DNA of 64,000 bases from Macrostomum hystrix (taxonomy: Eukaryota > Animalia > Platyhelminthes), in contig CATNEN010000027.1 in assembly GCA_950097015.1 (NCBI GenBank), positions 558,001 to 622,000 on the forward strand, in the 5' to 3' direction. The notes under the pieces were generated by a model that had not been told where the DNA came from, did not search any database, and was given only the letters and a program-made list of their open reading frames with translations. Of this stretch, positions 16,701 through 50,481 are shown piece by piece; within the stretch, counting starts at the first letter, position 1; each line of letters begins with the position of its first letter. The position numbers and the translations under genes were made by a program.

Positions 16701-17649
16701 TTCATAGCCTCATCCTCATATAGTTCTCCCTGTTCGAACTTTCACACCTGCACACTGGCAGGCGGTGACGCAGCCCCTGGATCGGACCCTTGAGAGACGC
16801 ATGCGTCTGGCGCTGCCCTTCACATGGCTGGCCGCGTGTCTCATGGCCAGCCCGCTGCTCTGGTTCGGCATCATCACGAAGGATCAAACATCACCGGCTG
16901 GCGGCGACCGTCTCATCTGCTGGGAGCGTTCAAACAGCGACGGGGAGAAGGCGGCCAAGCTGCTATACAGCTGCCTGACGATGTGCATCCAGTATGCCAC
17001 ACCCCTCACTGTTCTGCTGGTCGCTTTTGTCCTGATTCGGCGACGTCTACGAAGGAGACTTCATGGCGGCGGCGGCGGCGGCGGCGACGAGGCACCGGCG
17101 CGATCGCTGACCGCACCGCAGGCGGCCAGACGCCAGGCCGAGCGTCAGCGACAGCGGCGAGCTAACATTCTTCTGGCCTCGGTTGCTGTGGCATTCGGCT
17201 TGTCCTGGCTGCCGCTGTCAGCCTTCAACTTGGCCAACGACTACAAAATCTGGCAGGTGAAAGTGGAAACAGCCACCTCATCGGTGTCGGACGTTGAACA
17301 GCAGCTGCAGGCGGCCAGCACTGGCTTCTCGGTAGCTCTGGTGCAGGCTCTCTGCCTGCTGTTCGTCTTATGCTCCGCCTGCGTCAACCCTGTACTGTAC
17401 GGCTTCTTGAACGAGAACTTCAGAGCCGAGTTCCGCTCACTGGCGCCCGAATGGTGCAGGCGTCGGTTACGTCGCCGGCGCCAGTCGCAGGCGGGTGACG
17501 CGAGGGTTGGCGGGCAGGGCTTGACGGGTGGTGAAGCAACTGTGGGCCCCGGCGCCGCAGCGGAACTGCTCGACTGCGGCGAAATCGGGATTGACTGCGA
17601 CATTGACGAGCCGCAAGAGAAAGAGGCCTTTCCCGAGACTGTTGTGTAG
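13766..17649 (+). CDS. Class A GPCR, neuropeptide Y/F-receptor-like, 2 coding exons, 463 aa
   Basis: Exons 13766-14269 (donor CGG|GTGAGC) and 16762-17649 (acceptor GGCAG|GCG), phase 0. Seven hydrophobic segments with GNxLL, NLALSD, TM3 Cys (LCK), DRC, CWE in ECL2, SWLPL and NPVLYGFLNENFR. Ligand class inferred from motif similarity. Confidence 0.9.
14378..15122. repeat. 20-bp minisatellite (GTTTCAGAAGCGTCTCACTA)n, GPCR intron
   Basis: Perfect 5' block, degenerate 3' block. Confidence 0.95.
16400..16590 (-). mobile_element. tRNA-derived SINE (family B), 5' part, in the GPCR intron
   Basis: Minus strand GTGGCAGAGCGGTCTAGAGCG (A-box) and GAGCTCGATTCC (B-box); near-identical block to the 11260-11375 copy. 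Confidence 0.7.
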
Positions 17650-26251: not shown

Positions 26252-29200
26252 ATGGCACTTAAGTCTGCCGTTTCGTCAAGTAAGTATTTTTGTGTTATAT
26301 TAACTTTGTATTACTACGCTGTGTGTTCACTTAATGACCTGTGATTTTTTTCGTACTATACTATATCTCCTTTTATAAATATATATTTATGCAGAAAATT
26401 CATCAATCATAGAAATTAATTTTGATAGGAGCAAGAAAAACATAATTTCGTTTTTTATTGCAAAAATGTTACTAATTTATTTAATTTTACCTCAATGACC
26501 ACTGCCCATACCTATGGTAAAGGATGGGCAATGCAATCCAAGTTTGTAAAAGCCGCTTTAGTCAAAAACTGCATGGTAACAAAGAATGTTTCTCCGCAGA
26601 TATTCAAAACTATTGCTCTTGATTTTAACAAATGCAACAAATAGATCTGGCTTTTCCCCCATTCACTTATGCAATTGGTCTGTTTAAATAAAATGAAACT
26701 AAATGTATTTTGTTTCATGCTGCCACTCCTGATTCCAATGGCAGCATGCTAGGCGAAATCAGATTGTTGGTCTCTTAAACTTCCATAAAATGGCTTTTTC
26801 TATTGGAGGAATATTAATCAGCTAATTCCAATGAAAATTTAGCCCAATTCTTGATAATATTATGCAAACTATATGTAAGATATATCTTGTATGTTGATTT
26901 GTTTGTTTTGAAGTGTACTTTGCTAATTTTATTTTGTTTTCTTAGCTCAAAGTAGCAAGCAGTTTCAGATACTACAACCAAGTTTTAATCAAGAACATTA
27001 CAAAATTGTCGCATTTTTAATAAGCGCAACTTAGCTTTTAAAGTTACTTTTTTGGTTAAGATAAAAGTTATACTCTTCCTGAGATATTCCTATCCAAATA
27101 GTGTTTCCAATCATAATCTGTGTTGTCTACCATCTTAAATCTCATAGAAAACAGCTGGATTTCTGAAATGTATGAAAAGCATCAGAAAACAAAAATTATA
27201 AATTATTATATTTTTATGACCATGTATTCTCAGATATCTCTAAATCAAAATGGCCACATGTCAAAACAGCTACTTAACAAAGTAGTCACTCATAAAATGG
27301 CCAAGAATTTCTTTTATTTTAAGTACTTCAACCTCATTAGGACAAAAATGTGAAAATGTGTTCTTCTAGTTGTCAGAATAATTAAGTAAGAATCAATGCA
27401 AGAAAAAAAAGAATTTATATTGCCAATACAATAAAGATGTTCCATTATTTAACAATTGAAAGACTACACTATTTTTCCCATGGGGTAAAAACACAGGAAA
27501 GTATTTCAAATATCCACTGCCTACTTTACGATAGCTCCCAAACTGAATGACAGATTTTTGTCAAAGTACACCATATAGATCAAAATTTTCACCTGTTACA
27601 ATGAACTATGAGTACTATTTATAGCTGTATAAGTCAGCATTTTCAAGATATTCCTGAGTGAATTTTGTTGAAGACCTTGTCATAAGAACAAGTAGTTCAT
27701 TGCTCTGTATTAAGCTTCTGTGGCAAATCTGTGGTACTGATTTATACTCACACATTTCATTTTAATCTAGTGGTATACAAGCTTAATATGTAACAAATGT
27801 ATCTATGGCAACTCATTCTTATTCAATTGTTCAGTTCAGCAACATGTCCATGATTGTTTAGCCTTGGTTGATAGCATCAACAAGTTTTTCATACTCTCAT
27901 TCATTCATTCATTTTTCATACTGTCAAACCTTTTTTAAGGCCAATTTGAAATGGCTCAAGTGATAATTGATAATTCAAATGATAATCTAGGGAATATGAT
28001 TATCTTCTCTTCAATGATTGGGCCCATTCTCAGAAACTCACAAACCTTCCACAACCAGAGATTATGCGCGAGGTGATCCGCTCTCTCAAGAAGGAAGGCG
28101 ACTGGAAGGTGCTGATAGTGGACAAGCTCTCTATGCGGATGATCAGCGCCTGCTGCCGCATGCATGAGATTATGTCCGAGGGCATCACCCTGGTTGAAGA
28201 CGTGTCCAAGAAGCGCGAGCCCCTGCCCCTAGAAGCAATCTACCTGCTGCAGCCAACGCGCGAGTCTGTCCAGCTGCTGATGGCCGACTTTAGCGGCGTC
28301 CGCATGCAGTACCGCGCCGCTCACGTGTTCTTCACCGAGGCCTGCCCGGACGATTTGTTTAGCGAGCTTTGCAAAAGTCCTACTAGCAAGTTTATCAAGA
28401 CTCTGAAGGAGATTAACATCGCCTTCCTGCCCTACGAGAGCCAAGTGTTTAGCCTGGACAGTCCCGACACCATCTTTCATTATTTCCTGCGCGACCAGGC
28501 TGGCAAAACTCAGCATCTGGACCGCATCGCTGAGCAGATTGCCACCCTGTGCGCTTCGCTTGGCGAATTTCCCACCATTCGCTATCGAGCATTCAACGAG
28601 ACCAATCACCAGTTCGCTAACGCCATCAATTTCAAACTGGAGCAATACAAAGCCGACGATCCGTCTATGGGCGAGGGACCGCAGAAGGATAGGAGCCTGT
28701 TGATTGTGCTGGACCGGGGCGCCGATCCCATCACGCCGCTGCTGCACGAGCTCACCTTCCAGGTATAAACTGTCTGTCTGCTGGTTTCTGATTGGCTGCT
28801 GCCTTATCTGATTGCTGATCTTCTGATTGGCTGCAGCTTCATCGGTGCCGATTGTCTGATTGGCTATTGCTTTATCGATGCTAATGTTCTAAAATTTGCA
28901 GCCTTATCTGATTGCTGATCTTCTGATTGGCTGCAGACTTATCTGATTGCTGATCTTCTGATTGGCTGCAGCCTTATCTGATTGCTGATCTTCTGATTGG
29001 CTGCAGCCTTATCGGTGTCGATTGTCTGATTGGCTATTGCCTTATCGATGCTAATGTTCTAAAATTTGCAGCCTTATCTGATTGCTGATCTTCTGATTGG
29101 CAATTTTCAAAACTCAAACGCAGGTTGCCTTGTCGTTTACTGCTGAAGTTTATCTCTGCTCAGCTCTCAACTTTAATAGCATCTTTTTTCAACAATTCTA

Positions 29201-32200
29201 GTTTTCTGTTTAGGTTCTCAGACATCATTACTTTGACTTGTACATATATTAGAAGTTAATTTATCCGTAAGTTTAAAAGACTTCGAAAAAGGTATGATTA
29301 GAAAATTGTTTTTAGGCCTTATCTCGTCACGATATTTACATGTCCGTTCGGGTCACTGCACGTAGGTATAGAAAATATTGTCGTTTTCGACCAAGAATAG
29401 TCCATAAAAAATTAAAAGTACAACTAAAACCAGATTTATTTTTCTTCTCACTCAGCAAGGCTCATCTAAGTATTGTTTATAGATTATTCTACACGTCTCT
29501 ATTCCTCCTGTGTCGAAAAATCCCCTCATCTTGCATACATTAATTTCTAACTATCTGGTCAGCACTAAACTCTGTCTGAACTCTGTGGGTCTCCATAACC
29601 AATGCTCTGCTGGCAACACTCCCTTCCTGCCGTCTCTCCCTGTCAGGGCTTTATTTCCTCATTTGCTGATGTGTTCCGAGCCATCTGTAGCTCGTACTTG
29701 GTCATGACCAAATTGTAGATGCCAAAAAGATAAAAGTTTCAGATGCCAAAGAGATAAAAGTTTCAGATGCCAAAGCTGCAATAGTTTCAGATGCCAAAGC
29801 TGCAATAGTTTCAGATGCCAAAGCTGCAATAGTTTCAGATGCCAAAGCTGCAATAGTTTCAGATACCAAAGCTGCAATAGTTTCAGATGCCAAAGCTGCA
29901 ATAGTTTCAGATGCCAAAGCTGCAATAGTTTCAGATGCCAAAGCTGCAATAGTTTCAGATGCCAAAGCTGCAATAGTTTCAGATGCCAAAGCTGCAATAG
30001 TTTCAGATGCCAAAGCTGCAATAGTTTCAGATGCCAAAGCTGCAATAGTTTCAGATGCCAAAGCTGCAATAGTTTCAGATGCCAAAGCTGCAATAGTTTC
30101 AGATGCCAAAGCTGCAATAGTTTCAGATGCCAAAGCTACAATAGTTTCAGATGCCAAAGCTACAATAGTTTCAGATGCCAAAGCTGCAATAGTTTCAGAT
30201 GCCAAAGCTGCAATAGTTTCAGATGCCAAAGCTGCAATAGTTTCAGATGCCAAAGCTGCAATAGTTTCAGATGCCAAAGCTGCAATAGTTTCAGATGCCA
30301 AAGCTGCAATAGTTTCAGATGCCAAAGCTGCAATAGTTTCAGATGCCAAAGCTGCAATAGTTTCAGATGCCAAAGCTGCAATAGTTTCAGATGCCAAAGC
30401 TGCAATAGTTTCAGATGCCAAAGCTGCAATAGTTTCAGATGCCAAAGCTGCAATAGTTTCAGATGCCAAAGCTGCAATAGTTTCAGATGCCAAAGCTGCA
30501 ATAGTTTCAGATGCCAAAGCTGCAATAGTTTCAGATGCCAAAGCTGCAATAGTTTCAGATGCCAAAGCTGCAATAGTTTCAGATGCCAAAGCTGCAATAG
30601 TTTCAGATGCCAAAGCTGCAATAGTTTCAGATGCCAAAGCTACAATAGTTTCAGATGCCAAAGCTGCAATAGTTTCAGATGCCAAAGCTGCAATAGTTTC
30701 AGATGCCAAAGCTGCAATAGTTTCAGATGCCAAAGCTGCAATAGTTTCAGATGCCAAAGCTGCAATAGTTTCAGATGCCAAAGCTGCAATAGTTTCAGAT
30801 GCCAAAGCTGCAATAGTTTCAGATGCCAAAGCTGCAATAGTTTCAGATGCCAAAGCTGCAATAGTTTCAGATGCCAAAGCTGCAATAGTTTCAGATGCCA
30901 AAGCTGCAATAGTTTCAGATGCCAAAGCTACAATAGTTTCAGCTGCTAATTTTGCTACCTAAACTGTACCTAACCTACCTGCATCCGCAACACGCAGGCC
31001 ATGGCCTACGATCTGATCCCGATTGAAAACGACGTCTACAAGTACGTCAGCAGCACAGCCGGCGATGAGCGAGAGCGCGAAGTTGTGCTTGACGAGCGCG
31101 ACGACCTTTGGGTTGAGTTGCGCCACCTGCACATCGCCGTTGTTGGCCAGAATGTCACGTCTAAGCTGAAGCAGTTTTCAGAGGCCAAGCGCATGGGCGC
31201 CGGGGGTACCGGAGTCCGCGACCTGGCACAGATGATGAAGAAAATGCCGCAGTACCAGAAGGAGCTCAGTGCTTATAGTACTCATTTTCACCTGGCCGAG
31301 GACTGCATGCGAAACTATACTGGTCGAGTTGACAAGCTTTGCAAGGTGAGGGCTTTCAACCTTTATTCCTTATAATTAGGAATTAGGACGACATTCCAAA
31401 ATGGTCAGTAAACCCTCTGACCCACATTCCAAAATGGTCAGTAAACCCTCTGACCCACATTCCAAAATGGTCAGTAGACCCTCTGACCCACATTCCAAAA
31501 TGGTCAGTAGACCCTCTGACCCACATTCCAAAATGGTCAGTAAACCCTCTGACCCACATTCCAAAATGGTCAGTAAACCCTCTGACCCACATTCCAAAAT
31601 AGTCAGTAAACCCTCTGACCCACATTCCAAAATGGTCAGTAAACCATCTGACCCACATTCCAAAATGGTCAGTAGACCCTCTGACCCACATTCCAAAATG
31701 GTCAGTAAACCCTCTGACCCACACTCTAAAATGGCCAGTAAACCCTCTGACCCACATTCCAAAATACACATCCGGACATCGCCAGTTGCCATACTGATCC
31801 CAGACACAAACAAGTGAAACAAGGCATTCGCCTCACTCCAGGTGGAGCAGGACCTCGCTATGGGCTGTGACGCCGACGGCGAGAAAGTACGCGATCACAT
31901 GCGCGCCATTGTGCCCATCCTGCTGGACGCCTCCGTCACCGCCTACGACAAGCTGCGCATCATCCTGCTGTACGTCATCCACAAGACCGGCGTGTCAGAG
32001 GAGAACCTGGCCAAACTGCTGCAACACGGCCAGATTCCTGAGCAGGAGAAGCCTATACTGCTCAACGCCGCAAACCTGGGCGTGCCGGTCATTCAGGACG
32101 GCAAGGGCGGCGTTGGCGGCCTGATGGACGGCGGCAGGCGCAAGGTGAAATTCCTATCCTTTAGTAACATGCTACCGACACAGATTACATGCCCCTACCC

Positions 32201-45478: not shown

Positions 45479-45536
45479 GAGCAGCAGCAGCAGGAGCAGC
45501 AGCGGCAGTAGCAGCAGCAGCAGTAGCAGCAGTAGC

Positions 45537-45592
<56 letters not shown>

Positions 45593-45769
45593 TAGCAGCA
45601 GCAGGAGCAGCAGCAGCAGCAGCAGCAGGAGCAGCAGCGGCAGTAGCAGCAGCAGCAGTAGCAGCAGTAGCAGCAGCAGCAGTAGCAGCAGCAGCAGTAG
45701 TAGCAGCAGCAGCAGCAGCAGCAGTAGCAGCAGCAGGAGCAGCAGCAGCAGCAGCAGCAGTAGCAGCAA

Positions 45770-45811
<42 letters not shown>

Positions 45812-45859
45812 CAGCAGCAGGAGCAGCAGCAGCAGCAGCAGCAGCAGTAGCAGCAGTAG
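45479..45859. repeat. (CAG/TAG)n triplet array, ~127 triplets
   Basis: CAG with interspersed TAG, GAG and CGG; internal duplication; abuts the RNase H fragment. Confidence 0.97.
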
Positions 45860-46727
45860 GCGCTGAACTTCCTTGCCGATCTCCAACCGACGGACATCGA
45901 CGTCTGGACCGACGGCTCCGTCAGGGACGGCACCTCGGATGCCTGGGGCGCCGCCGTTATCAACACCCGCAGGTGGGGCACCATTATTGCCGCCCCTGCC
46001 GGCCGGGTTGCTTGCTCCTTCCAGGCGGAGATATGCGCGATACGGGCGGCCCTCGATTACATCAGACAGCTGACGCCGGACCACGGGACGTCGATCCGCA
46101 TCCATAGCGACTCGCTGACGGCGCTGGCAGCCCTTGAGCACGGCCCCTGCGAGCAGCGCTCGGCTGATGGCAGCCTTTGCTGGGCAACGCTGAGCGCCAT
46201 TCAACACAGCTGCGAGTTTGTTTGGGTCCCGGCGCACTGCGACATCCCGGGAAATGAGATGGCCGACCGCTACACTAATCGCGCCCGCCTGGAACGACAG
46301 CAGGACAGGCCCATCTCTTTCCAAGCTGCTAAGGCGGCCCTTCGCCGGGCGAGAGCCGCCCTTGACCTCGAGGTGCTGGGGCCGTGCTGGCGCTCCACCC
46401 CTAAACACCTCAGCCGCACCGAGACGGTCGCCATCAACCAGCTCAGGGCGGGATGCTCTATGCTGGCCAATTCCACCCGCCATCGTCTCGGCCTCACTGA
46501 CGACCCGCTCTGCCGCGACTGTGGCAATCTCGATACTGAAGAGCACATTCTCTTCGAGTGCCCGCGCGGCGACGGTACCCGTGTTCGCTACGACAACTGG
46601 GACGAGGCCCTGCATTTACACCCTGAACAAGTCCTCGCCCTCCTGCGCAGACTGGGGCGCCTCTGAGCGCTCCTCCTCCTCGCTGCCTGTAGCAGCTTTG
46701 GGGACGGTGGATTCAGAAGAAGAAGAA
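45860..46727 (+). mobile_element. 5'-truncated non-LTR retrotransposon 3' end: RNase H + CCHC zinc knuckle + short 3'UTR
   Basis: Stop-free frame 45860-46666 with no start codon: VWTDGS, QAEICAI, IHSDS, FVWVPAHCDIPGNEMAD (RNase HI D/E/D/D present), then CRDCGNLDTEEHILFEC. This layout matches I/Loa/ingi-type LINE ORF2 ends. Followed by a (GAA)n(CAG)n tail. Confidence 0.9.
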
Positions 46728-46835
46728 GAAGAAGAAGCAGCAGCAGCAGCAGTAGCAGCAGTAGCAGCAGTAGCAGCAGCAGCAGCAGCAACATCAGAAG
46801 CAGCAGCAGCAGCATAAGCAGCAGTAGCAGCAGTG
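46728..46835. repeat. (GAA)n-(CAG/TAG)n tail of the LINE fragment
   Basis: Immediately follows the ~60-bp 3'UTR. Confidence 0.9.
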
Positions 46836-46854
46836 GCCACAGTTACAGTAAGAC

Positions 46855-47060
46855 GATAAGAAAGTCAGGACAGATGTACACACCCTGTGTGCGTGTGTGC
46901 TCAGGAGTCAGCGGAATGGGCAGAATTAACTTCTTCGCTGGCTGCGGGTCTAGTGTCGTCAAGCGATGTCCCGTCACCCGAAGCCCTCCTACAATTATTA
47001 TTAGTAATAGTAGCAGCAACAGAGGTAGCAGCATTAGCTGCAATAGCAGCAGCTGCACGT
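46855..47060 (+). mobile_element. SINE family B, 5'-truncated copy with ATT/AGC tail
   Basis: AGAAAGTCAGGACAGATGTACAC..GTGCGTGTGTGCTCAGGAGTCAGCGGAATGGGCAGAATT..CGCTGGCTGCGGGTCTAGTGTC matches the reverse complement of 11078-11215. Confidence 0.7.
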
Positions 47061-47868
47061 TTTATAATAACAGCTAGTGCATTTCCAGTATATCAGGCCA
47101 TACGAATGCACTACTGTATACGAGTAAATTATGCCTTTGTCTATTTCTGAACGGATACAAACACACATACGCACACACAAGGCCCTGGTCCATTGAAAAT
47201 TACAAACTCCAAATTATGTAGTGAAGTGAGGCTATTTCATACAAATCCTGATAGTCAGTGGGACCGTGGGCGGATCCGTTTCAAGTAAATGAAGGTCCGC
47301 CACTGCTTTGCTCAGTGCAGAGCTATTTCAGCCAACTTTCCACCGCAGTCCTTCACCTCGCGATATCGATTCCAGTCTGCTGAATAGGCAGATCCCGTTG
47401 GCAAGGAATGACCTACACAGCGACGCCTTAGATAGCGCGAACGAAAGAAAACTAAGTCGCGAACCGAGAGACAATATCCACGCATTGCACACGAAAAGCA
47501 TATTATGAGCATAATGCGAGAATAGAATGCAGAAGCTGCTACCGTTTGGGCAGCATAACTTGAGTCCCTAATTCTCGCCGCCCAGTCAACCACCCCCTCC
47601 CCCCCTGCTAACCAGCTGCTGAAAATTGTTTAGCTTCTCGACTCCGAGATCTGGCGAAATCGATTAAACTCTCCAAGCGATTCGTCCTTCTCTCTTTCTC
47701 TCTCTCTCTCCGTAAGCAAGCGGCTGCAGATACACCCACTCCGTATATCTGTGAATAGATATACGGCTACTGTCGCCTCGTTCTGTGCCAGCAATTGTGT
47801 GAGCCCCAGCCTATAGTCCTAGCCTAGCAACTACACAGCTTTTACAAGGTAGCAACCGGAACTTAGCA

Positions 47869-49849
47869 ATGTCTGAGGAAGCTGGTGAGTCTTCTTCTAG
47901 CTCGTATTTAACAATTTTAAAAGAAAACATGTTCATTCTAAAATATTCGACAAAGATTTTCCAAATTGTTTTCAGCTCCCGCCCCCACTGAGGTACAGAC
48001 CAACCTCCCGATCTTGAATTCTAGCAGTTTTGTTCCGTTTTTTTCATCTACAAATGGCTTTCGGCTTTCTTATTTTCGTGACCGCAGATTTTCTAGTGCT
48101 TTTTGAACTTTTTTGAAAATCAGAGACTTCTCTACGTACTACAGAAATCTGCAGTACATTGGCAATGCAATCCAAATATAGCCAGTTCGTTGCTTCAAAA
48201 AGAATAAAACCCGATCGCAAATAGATTTCCTCCAGTTTCTCGGTGATAAGTATCCAGCTATCAATTTGTCAACCTCGATTTACATAATTAATATTGCATA
48301 GAAAATAAATTTCATAACTTCCCATCCTCCCCACTCAAATAGGCTCCGGTTCCTGAGGAGAAGCCAGCAGAGACAACCGCTGCCGAGGTAAGTAGCTTTC
48401 GAAATTTTATTTCTATACTGCTATTGTGGAGAATTTTTATCTAAAAACCCTCGTCCTATCGTAAGGGCTGGAGAAAAAAGAAACTTTTTGTTGACTGGTG
48501 CTTTTAAAGGAGCGGAGGATGAGAGGAAAGGGCGGATTTAAAAGGAGCGGATTTATTGGGAGAATATTTAAAAAGGGGCGGATCTAAAAAGGGCGGATTG
48601 AAAGGAGCGGAGGATTTGAGGAAAGGGGGAGATTTAAAGGGGCGGATTTAAAAGGGGCGGAAGTTTAGAGTAATGGGGCGGATTTAAAAGGGGGGAGTTT
48701 AAAAGGAGTGGATTAAATGGGAGCTGATTTAAAAAAGGCGGATTTAAAAAAGGCGGATTTTTAAAAAGGCGGATTTAAAAAGGCGGATTTAAAAGGGCGG
48801 ATTTAAAATGGCGGATTCAAAACGGCGGATTTAAAAGGGCGGATTTAAAAAGGCGGATTTAAAAAGGCGGATTTAAAAGGGCGGATTTTAAAAAAGGTGG
48901 ATTTAAAAAGGCGGATTTAAAAAATGACGGGATTTAAAAAGGCGGATTTAAAAAGGCGGATTTAAAAAATGACGGGATTTAAAAAGGGCGGATTTAAAGA
49001 AGGCGGATTTTAAAAAAGGCGGATTTAAAAGGGCGGATTTAAAAAATGACGGGATTTAAAAAAGGCGGATTTAAAAAAGGGCGGATTGAAAAGGAGCAGA
49101 GGATTTGAGGAAAAGCGCGGATTTAAAGGGGCGCATTTTAAAAGGGGCGGATTAAAAAAGGGATGGAAGTTTAGAGGCAAGAGGCTTATTTTAGCGGGGC
49201 TATTGTTTTTAAGAAAGTGGCGGATTTAGGATGGACGAAAGTTTGGTATTGAGAATTATTTCATTTTCCTGTCTAAAAAGGTGCTTTAGTAATTTTAACA
49301 AAGTGACAATCGCCTATAATTAGTTGCTGTTGAATGAAAATCTGCGCTTCTCTCGAGTTCAGGAGTCCCCAAAGCCAGACAGTGCAGCCGCACCCAGCGA
49401 TCAGGTGAGAACAATTTAGGAATCGCAGCAGTGATGTTTTTTTAACTCAGTTTATGCTTTGCACTGGCTAATTCGATCGATAGAGCTAAAATTACATCTC
49501 ACATGGTTTCTGGACGTGCAGGTCGCATTATATATAACTTATATTAATTTTCCACGGCAAAAACTAGGATTCGCACAAAAAGTTTGCACAGGCACAAATC
49601 TAATAACCATTAACTTTACATTCTACTCATCAGTAGAGTGTCGCAGATATTATCATTTCTAAGTAATTTGGTTACAAAACATCTTAAAAGTTACAAATTT
49701 GGCAAACAAAGTACAATTTATGTGACACTGATCTCGGTGCACAGGGCGAGAAGAAGGAAGGCGAGACGGCGGCGAACGGCAAGGAGGGCGACGTCAATAA
49801 GAATGTGAAAGACCAGCAGCCCGGCAACGTGTGCTGCACAATCATCTGA
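47869..49849 (+). CDS. Novel 74-aa acidic Ala/Glu/Pro-rich protein with C-terminal CCaaX lipidation motif, 5 small exons
   Basis: Exons 47869-47884 (|GTGAGT), 47976-47992 (TTTTCAG| ... |GTACAG), 48343-48387 (|GTAAGT), 49363-49404 (|GTGAGA), 49745-49849 (TGA). They join in frame to MSEEAAPAPTEAPVPEEKPAETTAAEESPKPDSAAAPSDQGEKKEGETAANGKEGDVNKNVKDQQPGNVCCTII. The exons are GC-rich islands in AT-rich DNA. Confidence 0.85.
48500..49190. repeat. 14-16-bp minisatellite (GGCGGATTTAAAAA)n in intron 3 of the 74-aa gene
   Basis: Variable A-run length. Confidence 0.92.
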
Positions 49850-50481
49850 TGGCCGCTAATCCGTTTCAAATTTTGAATTAGCGCCCAAAAATTAATCAGA
49901 ATAACAAAGCTAACCGACACACTTATTTATGTCTGAACCTCAATCCTGCTAATCTTAGTAACTCCACGGCCATTCTGAGTAAATTGAATGATCACTTGGT
50001 TCGGGCAGAATTTTGTGATTAAATCATTCACATTAACAAACCTTCAGGAAAAATCTGAATTTTATTCAAGGACAATAGGAAGAGAGTAATTGAAAAAACA
50101 ATCAAGAGTTAATTCAACCTTTTGAAAGTTCTTTTCTGCGCTGACTAAAAAAGTGGGTCGAAACAATTTTTGTGAAAATAGACATTTATTATTTAGCTTT
50201 CGCCCAAAGTAAAAAATTTTTGTTTAATCACCGTACGGTAGTTGTGGTGACAGGTCTCGAAAGTTTAATGTGCGCTAAACGCAAAGTCTTATTAATTGTT
50301 TAAAAACTGCATAAAGTGTTTATTTCGTGTTTATTTTTGTGTCCGAAAAAATCAAGGGAACGATAGAAAATCAAATATTTTTCTCTACGGGTCTCGATCT
50401 CGAGCGGGTGAATAAAAATAAAGTTGATCAATGCAGATAAATATGTTGTCAATGCTTGCGCTTTTACCGTTTTGCAGATTT

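Follow-up and report, generated by a model that had tools for sequence, protein, structure and literature searches.

BASP1, GAP-43, and MARCKS are disordered, lipid-anchored proteins that are rich in Ala, Glu, Pro, and Lys, poor in aromatic residues, and equipped with basic effector domains, and their anchor sits at the N-terminus (i.e., myristoylation of a Gly or palmitoylation of an N-terminal Cys). The paralemmins (PALM1-3) are acidic and hydrophilic proteins without a transmembrane segment that end in a CaaX box, and in paralemmin this end is prenylated while the cysteines adjoining the box are palmitoylated (PMC2148134). They are ~42 kDa in size (~380 aa), carry an 11-residue paralemmin motif, a basic cluster before three cysteines, and Met at position X, and form isoforms through the in-frame choice of exons; the family is considered vertebrate-specific, a lancelet fragment being its only trace outside vertebrates (PMC3405040). 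For CaaX boxes in general, Leu, Ile, or Phe at position X directs geranylgeranylation (PMC9141697). In Ykt6, a folded longin-SNARE that ends in CCAIM, both C-terminal cysteines are prenylated, by FTase and then by GGTase-III (PMC12001115; PMC9141697). Finally, the schistosome MEGs are flatworm genes that combine very short exons, much longer introns, and in-frame exon skipping with secreted products (PMC10526429).

Here, we describe a small gene of the flatworm Macrostomum hystrix that shares parts of these designs, found in a 64,000-nt stretch of DNA (assembly GCA_950097015.1, contig CATNEN010000027.1, positions 558,001 to 622,000; hereafter the window). Its product resembles the paralemmins in being acidic and hydrophilic without a transmembrane segment, in ending in a CaaX box with an adjacent cysteine, and in in-frame exon choice, but differs in length (60 aa, one sixth of their size), in having a single extra Cys, in lacking a basic cluster, and in carrying Ile, Val, or Leu at position X among its known copies. 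It was not assigned to the paralemmins, given this size and a last exon without a Pfam match. The product is alike in composition to BASP1, GAP-43, and MARCKS, while its own anchor, if any, is C-terminal; its N-terminus (Met-Ser-Glu-Glu, or Met-Ser-Gly-Glu in the paralogue described below) bears no N-terminal lipidation signal, which sets it outside that group, and neither word-index nor exhaustive profile protein searches found any sequence similarity to the three proteins. An earlier note on this DNA had likened the product to paralemmin, BASP1, GAP-43, and MARCKS, and that likeness holds for composition and design, not for homology. Ykt6 offers the same pair of adjacent C-terminal cysteines, the second of which opens the CaaX box, and the CCAIV end of the paralogue comes close to its own; the present protein differs in having no folded domain and an X residue that points to GGTase-I acting first. 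The very short exons, much longer introns, and in-frame exon skipping recall the schistosome MEGs, but the product ends in a predicted cytosolic lipidation signal, and membership was rejected in that a signal peptide is lacking and the lengths of exons 1 and 2 (16 and 17 nt) cannot be divided by three. The CC-a-a-X theme is known, and the family itself is an orphan; as far as motifs can tell, its members are probably small proteins tethered to a membrane that have not been described before.

Gene structure and the expressed transcript

The gene lies on the forward strand, and its features are given below in positions of the window.

47806-47868, forward strand: 5′ UTR; the longest RNA contig begins at 47806 and others at 47823, and an upstream ATG is absent
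47869-47884, forward strand: coding part of exon 1, 16 nt, ATG start, ends in phase 1, donor GTGAGT; 3′ join confirmed by RNA contigs
47976-47992, forward strand: exon 2, a micro-exon of 17 nt, from RNA contig letters and splice context
48343-48387, forward strand: exon 3, 45 nt, phase 0-0, rich in Ala, Pro, Glu, and Thr; in RNA contigs
48527-49162, no strand assigned: intronic tandem array with a period of 14 nt and ~41 copies, spliced out
49363-49404, forward strand: exon 4, a candidate cassette of 42 nt, phase 0-0, read from the sequence only and absent from RNA contigs
49745-49849, forward strand: exon 5, the last coding exon, 34 codons (102 nt) plus stop; in RNA contigs
49793-49837, forward strand: conserved block VNKNVKDQQPG followed by two residues and CC, (nearly) invariant in alignments of the three known copies
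49835-49846, forward strand: CaaX box CTII, immediately before the stop and preceded by an additional Cys at 49832-49834
49850-50461, forward strand: 3′ UTR, with two overlapping AATAAA signals at 50411-50422; the contig of one run reaches ~261 nt beyond 50200

GT donors and AG acceptors are present at all five exons, the joined frame continues without a break to NVCCTII and the stop, and the GC content is 0.50-0.76 in the exons vs 0.27-0.39 in the introns. From the RNA contigs and the AATAAA signals, the transcript spans ~47806 to ~50460, and the ATG at 47869 is its first; nothing coding-like and no ORF of note was seen in the 3′ UTR.

The RNA evidence comes from eight small public runs of two studies in which the last exon and the sequence 3′ of it are present, and four of these runs were aligned to 47600-50200. 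The run type "RNA" is a guessed label, and the RNA nature of these data was deduced from splicing together with the lack of an intronless genomic copy. Contigs from three runs, covering both studies, join exons 1, 2, 3, and 5 at exactly the predicted GT/AG sites (47884/47976, 47992/48343, and 48387/49745). Exon 2 is represented in them by 15 letters that equal 47976-47990, with the AG that follows completing the exon; the aligner set both cuts 2 nt too far left, since AG is the last dinucleotide of exons 2 and 3 as well as of both introns. Contig positions are contiguous over the join of exons 3 and 5 in all three spliced runs, so exon 4 is missing from every one of these contigs and the mRNA that they represent codes for a protein of 60 aa. 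The last exon has matches at just two loci of the worm's own genome, each of them broken up by introns, so the intronless form is spliced RNA; a processed DNA copy as the source of the contigs was rejected on the same grounds. Over the intronic tandem array, only two low-depth RNA contigs were found, both in one run. The gene is hence real, expressed, and spliced in Macrostomum hystrix, with four exons and a possible optional fifth.

These data also bear on what had been proposed from the letters of the window. The earlier note had placed five exons, with GT/AG borders and a joint frame to NVCCTII-stop, at positions that all prove exact in the sequence, and the hidden protein-coding micro-exon gene that it drew from them is borne out by the spliced contigs of three runs and by selection on the tail (9 vs 0 differences, see below). 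Two of its four joins (47884/47976 and 47992/48343) were seen, while 48387/49363 and 49404/49745 were not, exon 4 being missing from the three contigs. Its 74-aa product gives way to the 60-aa form of the contigs in which exon 4 is skipped, and the composition that it gave for the 74-aa model (12 Glu, 12 Ala, and no aromatic residues) agrees with our counts. It had also pointed out that exons of phase 0-0 allow in-frame skipping, and skipping of exon 4 is precisely the form observed.

Whether exon 4 is used elsewhere bears on the length of the protein. In the observed intron (48388-49744), 35 stop-free AG..GT cassettes with a length divisible by three are possible, and exon 4 ranks first among them, with the best acceptor and the best donor (8/9 consensus positions, equal to exon 3); its splice-site scores match those of exon 3, its GC content is 0.64 vs 0.35-0.39 around it, and its composition agrees with that of the remaining protein. 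All of this speaks for the 74-aa form as a real and regulated isoform of some tissue, stage, or condition, in which cassette choice tunes linker length. The RNA contigs speak against it: exon 4 is missing from 3/3 spliced contigs, and in one run, where the mRNA contig has a depth of 347 and intron pieces of depth 4-7 were assembled, none of these pieces lies over exon 4 (contig read depth gives no basis for ranking expression). Further, a search for a counterpart of exon 4 in the paralogue and in the third known copy (L004, Logan contig DRR639055_101253) found none. We consider the regulated isoform possible and, on balance, somewhat doubtful, and would only tentatively list exon 4 as a cassette that is skipped by default and plausibly included at a low level or under some conditions.

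The observed 60-aa product has a net charge of ~-7, a pI of ~4.1, and no aromatic residues. It starts with the acidic sequence MSEEA, contains neither a signal peptide nor a hydrophobic segment (GRAVY -0.95), and is presumably disordered. No polybasic stretch precedes the cysteines, and the only charged residues in the flanking block are two Lys and one Asp.

Several features were noted around the gene. Long tandem arrays occur in the introns of the paralogue too, with short units that are unrelated (L003, 8440-8990; L002, 780-1330; window, 48527-49162), which suggests that tandem arrays readily colonise the introns of both paralogues. Downstream, a long tandem array with a 22-nt unit (TGTGGGTCAAGCAGTCAGTCAG) begins right after the poly(A) site of the gene, runs from 50484 to ~52200, and yields several long spurious ORFs. 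Upstream lie long trinucleotide arrays (45480-45870 and 46700-47060) whose different frames give poly-Ser, poly-Leu, poly-Cys, or poly-Ala, and, between them, a 135-aa ORF (46259-46666, forward strand) that ends in ...CRDCG..EEHILFECP and has no Pfam match at E <= 0.01; we take this end to resemble the C-terminal tail of a non-LTR retrotransposon ORF2. A 407-aa open frame on the reverse strand (29702-30925) matches the Pfam ALTTAQ repeat (9.6e-21), 5-fold beta-flower (5.5e-15), and phage T4 gp5 C-terminal trimerisation domain (7.3e-15); such phage-tail-spike-like repeats are unexpected for an animal genome. Exon-sized frames at 28064-28768 (forward strand, Sec1 family, 8.9e-58) and 16765-17649 (forward strand, 7tm_1 rhodopsin-type GPCR, 5.2e-16) belong to ordinary neighbour genes.

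The gene family and selection on its tail

One paralogue is present in the same genome (C38:1171-1173 kb), and it shares the four-exon layout. Its exon 1 comprises 16 nt from the ATG, ends in phase 1, and has the donor GTGAGT, and it is followed by a 20-nt micro-exon, a 48-nt exon rich in Thr and Glu, and a last exon that ends in NVCCAIV and a stop. The product has 63 aa, a net charge of ~-8, and no aromatic residues. Ahead of the last exon, the two proteins are alike in character and unlike in sequence. Their last exons share 73% identity, and over the 18 codons from Glu-Gly-Asp to Cys-Cys the two genes show 9 synonymous vs 0 non-synonymous differences. The frame is therefore translated, and its tail is under purifying selection at the protein level.

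For relatives elsewhere, searches were run exon by exon. A profile of the two tails, compared exhaustively with all 1.84 billion protein cluster representatives, returned one true relative (P0001, E = 5e-6). This entry is a miscalled ORF at positions 674-991 of L004, a 3.7-kb contig of run DRR639055, whose call reads a TGA as sense and passes from intronic sequence into that of the last exon. A mis-annotation is therefore all that databases show of the family. Read correctly, the last exon of L004 is preceded by a pyrimidine tract and CAG, reads ...VNKNVKDQQPGQMCCTVL-stop, and ends in CCTVL, and ~720 nt upstream of it lies a 60-nt exon rich in Glu, Thr, Pro, and Ala with the donor GTGAGA. A second match of the profile search (P0002) was rejected as chance, as it covers only profile positions 15-27 and falls within a seven-fold repeat. 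Word-index protein searches gave no candidate for the last exon extended in frame to 45 aa (25-79-aa proteins eligible), only P0001 itself for residues 66-105 of P0001, and no further relatives over the range of 25-184 aa. A Pfam scan of the last exon with E up to 10 revealed no family (the other exons, at <=15 aa, are too short to scan), a PDB profile search gave chance matches only (E >= 0.3), and an ESM Atlas search by features gave no usable match. The literature on CCTII ends, or on Macrostomum together with geranylgeranyl, provided nothing relevant.

Common to the three copies is VNKNVKDQQPG, followed by two variable residues, CC, T or A, I or V, and then I, V, or L, and the C-terminal module VNKNVKDQQPG-x-x-CC-a-a-X is the sole part of the protein under clear constraint. 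With CCAIV in the paralogue and CCTVL in L004, and with purifying selection on the tail, the expectation of the earlier note that relatives would keep the CCaaX end came true; its proposal of a lineage-restricted family also fits, as the exhaustive search of 1.84 billion proteins gave no relatives beyond P0001. By its sequence, the family is apparently an orphan restricted to flatworms, with one paralogue and one outside sequence as its relatives. ORF-based callers do not see genes of this kind, and so small a number of relatives therefore says little about the true distribution.

The predicted lipid anchor and competing readings

In all three copies, the last four residues ahead of the stop open with a Cys (CTII in the window, CAIV in the paralogue, and CTVL in L004), with an aliphatic residue at a2 (I, I, and V, respectively) and I, V, or L at position X. 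Geranylgeranylation by GGTase-I would be expected because X is I, V, or L; the I and L fit the published rule, while the V of the paralogue is not listed there (PMC9141697). As for the machinery, the genome encodes PPTA prenyltransferase alpha repeats (two loci), ICMT (two loci), and 34 DHHC matches, as found by a search that took in these three families.

From these motif rules, we infer a C-terminally doubly lipidated, membrane-tethered polyanion, a reading that we hold to be moderately probable. GGTase-I would geranylgeranylate the CaaX cysteine, after which the last three residues would be removed and the new end methylated. The neighbouring Cys could then gain a second lipid, either palmitate via a DHHC enzyme or a second prenyl group as in Ykt6, so that the protein might be held on the cytosolic face of a membrane with its polyanionic chain projecting. 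The 11 invariant residues beside the anchor would probably be recognised, either by the modifying enzymes or by a partner. Still less certain is that the protein acts specifically as a cortical scaffold.

The tail could also have been conserved for reasons other than lipids. A soluble, acidic, unlipidated protein, in which the conserved tail and its paired cysteines serve partner binding, metal binding, or redox chemistry, would account for an invariance that reaches 11-13 residues past what a lipid anchor needs, and for the lack of a polybasic helper region. We nevertheless think it unlikely, as the Cys sits exactly four residues before the stop in 3/3 copies, and the aliphatic a2 and the I, V, or L at X are retained even where the residues themselves vary (T/A, I/V, and I/V/L). 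Tail residues that vary yet keep their class form the pattern expected of a CaaX box and not of a fixed binding peptide. Considerably further off stands the chance ORF, i.e., an open frame within a non-coding or otherwise functioning transcript, for which one may cite that the ORF is short (60 codons), of low complexity, and without a Pfam, PDB, or Atlas match. A frame of that origin is hard to square with 9 synonymous and 0 non-synonymous differences in the tail, with a paralogue that keeps the frame, exon phases, and stop position, with a last exon that is also kept in L004, and with a start that is the first AUG of the transcript, and we regard it as extremely improbable.

A prenylated-peptide precursor resembling the fungal a-factor would place the lipid on the same cysteine and give it another destination, with the acidic pro-region cut off and the lipidated C-terminal peptide being the active and possibly exported part. 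The tiny size of the precursor, the fast divergence of its N-terminal part next to 11-18 invariant residues beside the CaaX box, the existence of two paralogues, and a transcript that assembled well even from small runs are in keeping with this. In its hydrophilic character the conserved peptide departs from the fungal lipopeptide pheromones, a processing site is not apparent, and we know of no prenylated secreted peptide in animals, which leaves this reading very unlikely. It would be a long shot, too, that both genes are precursors of a geranylgeranylated and methylated peptide signal, an animal counterpart of the a-factor-type pheromones in a hermaphroditic flatworm. Among these readings, we prefer the doubly lipidated, membrane-tethered polyanion.

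Implications for Macrostomum and for gene finding

The locus illustrates that ORF-based calling misses small micro-exon genes: in the searched protein collections, this family is represented by one miscalled ORF and never by a correct model. Should the tail carry the predicted lipids, Macrostomum would possess a minimal polyanion of 60 residues anchored at its C-terminus, and this design would have evolved separately from both vertebrate paralemmin and the N-terminally anchored BASP1-type proteins. The 11 invariant residues adjoining the anchor would then make a compact tag for membrane targeting or recognition, in a transformable flatworm genus.
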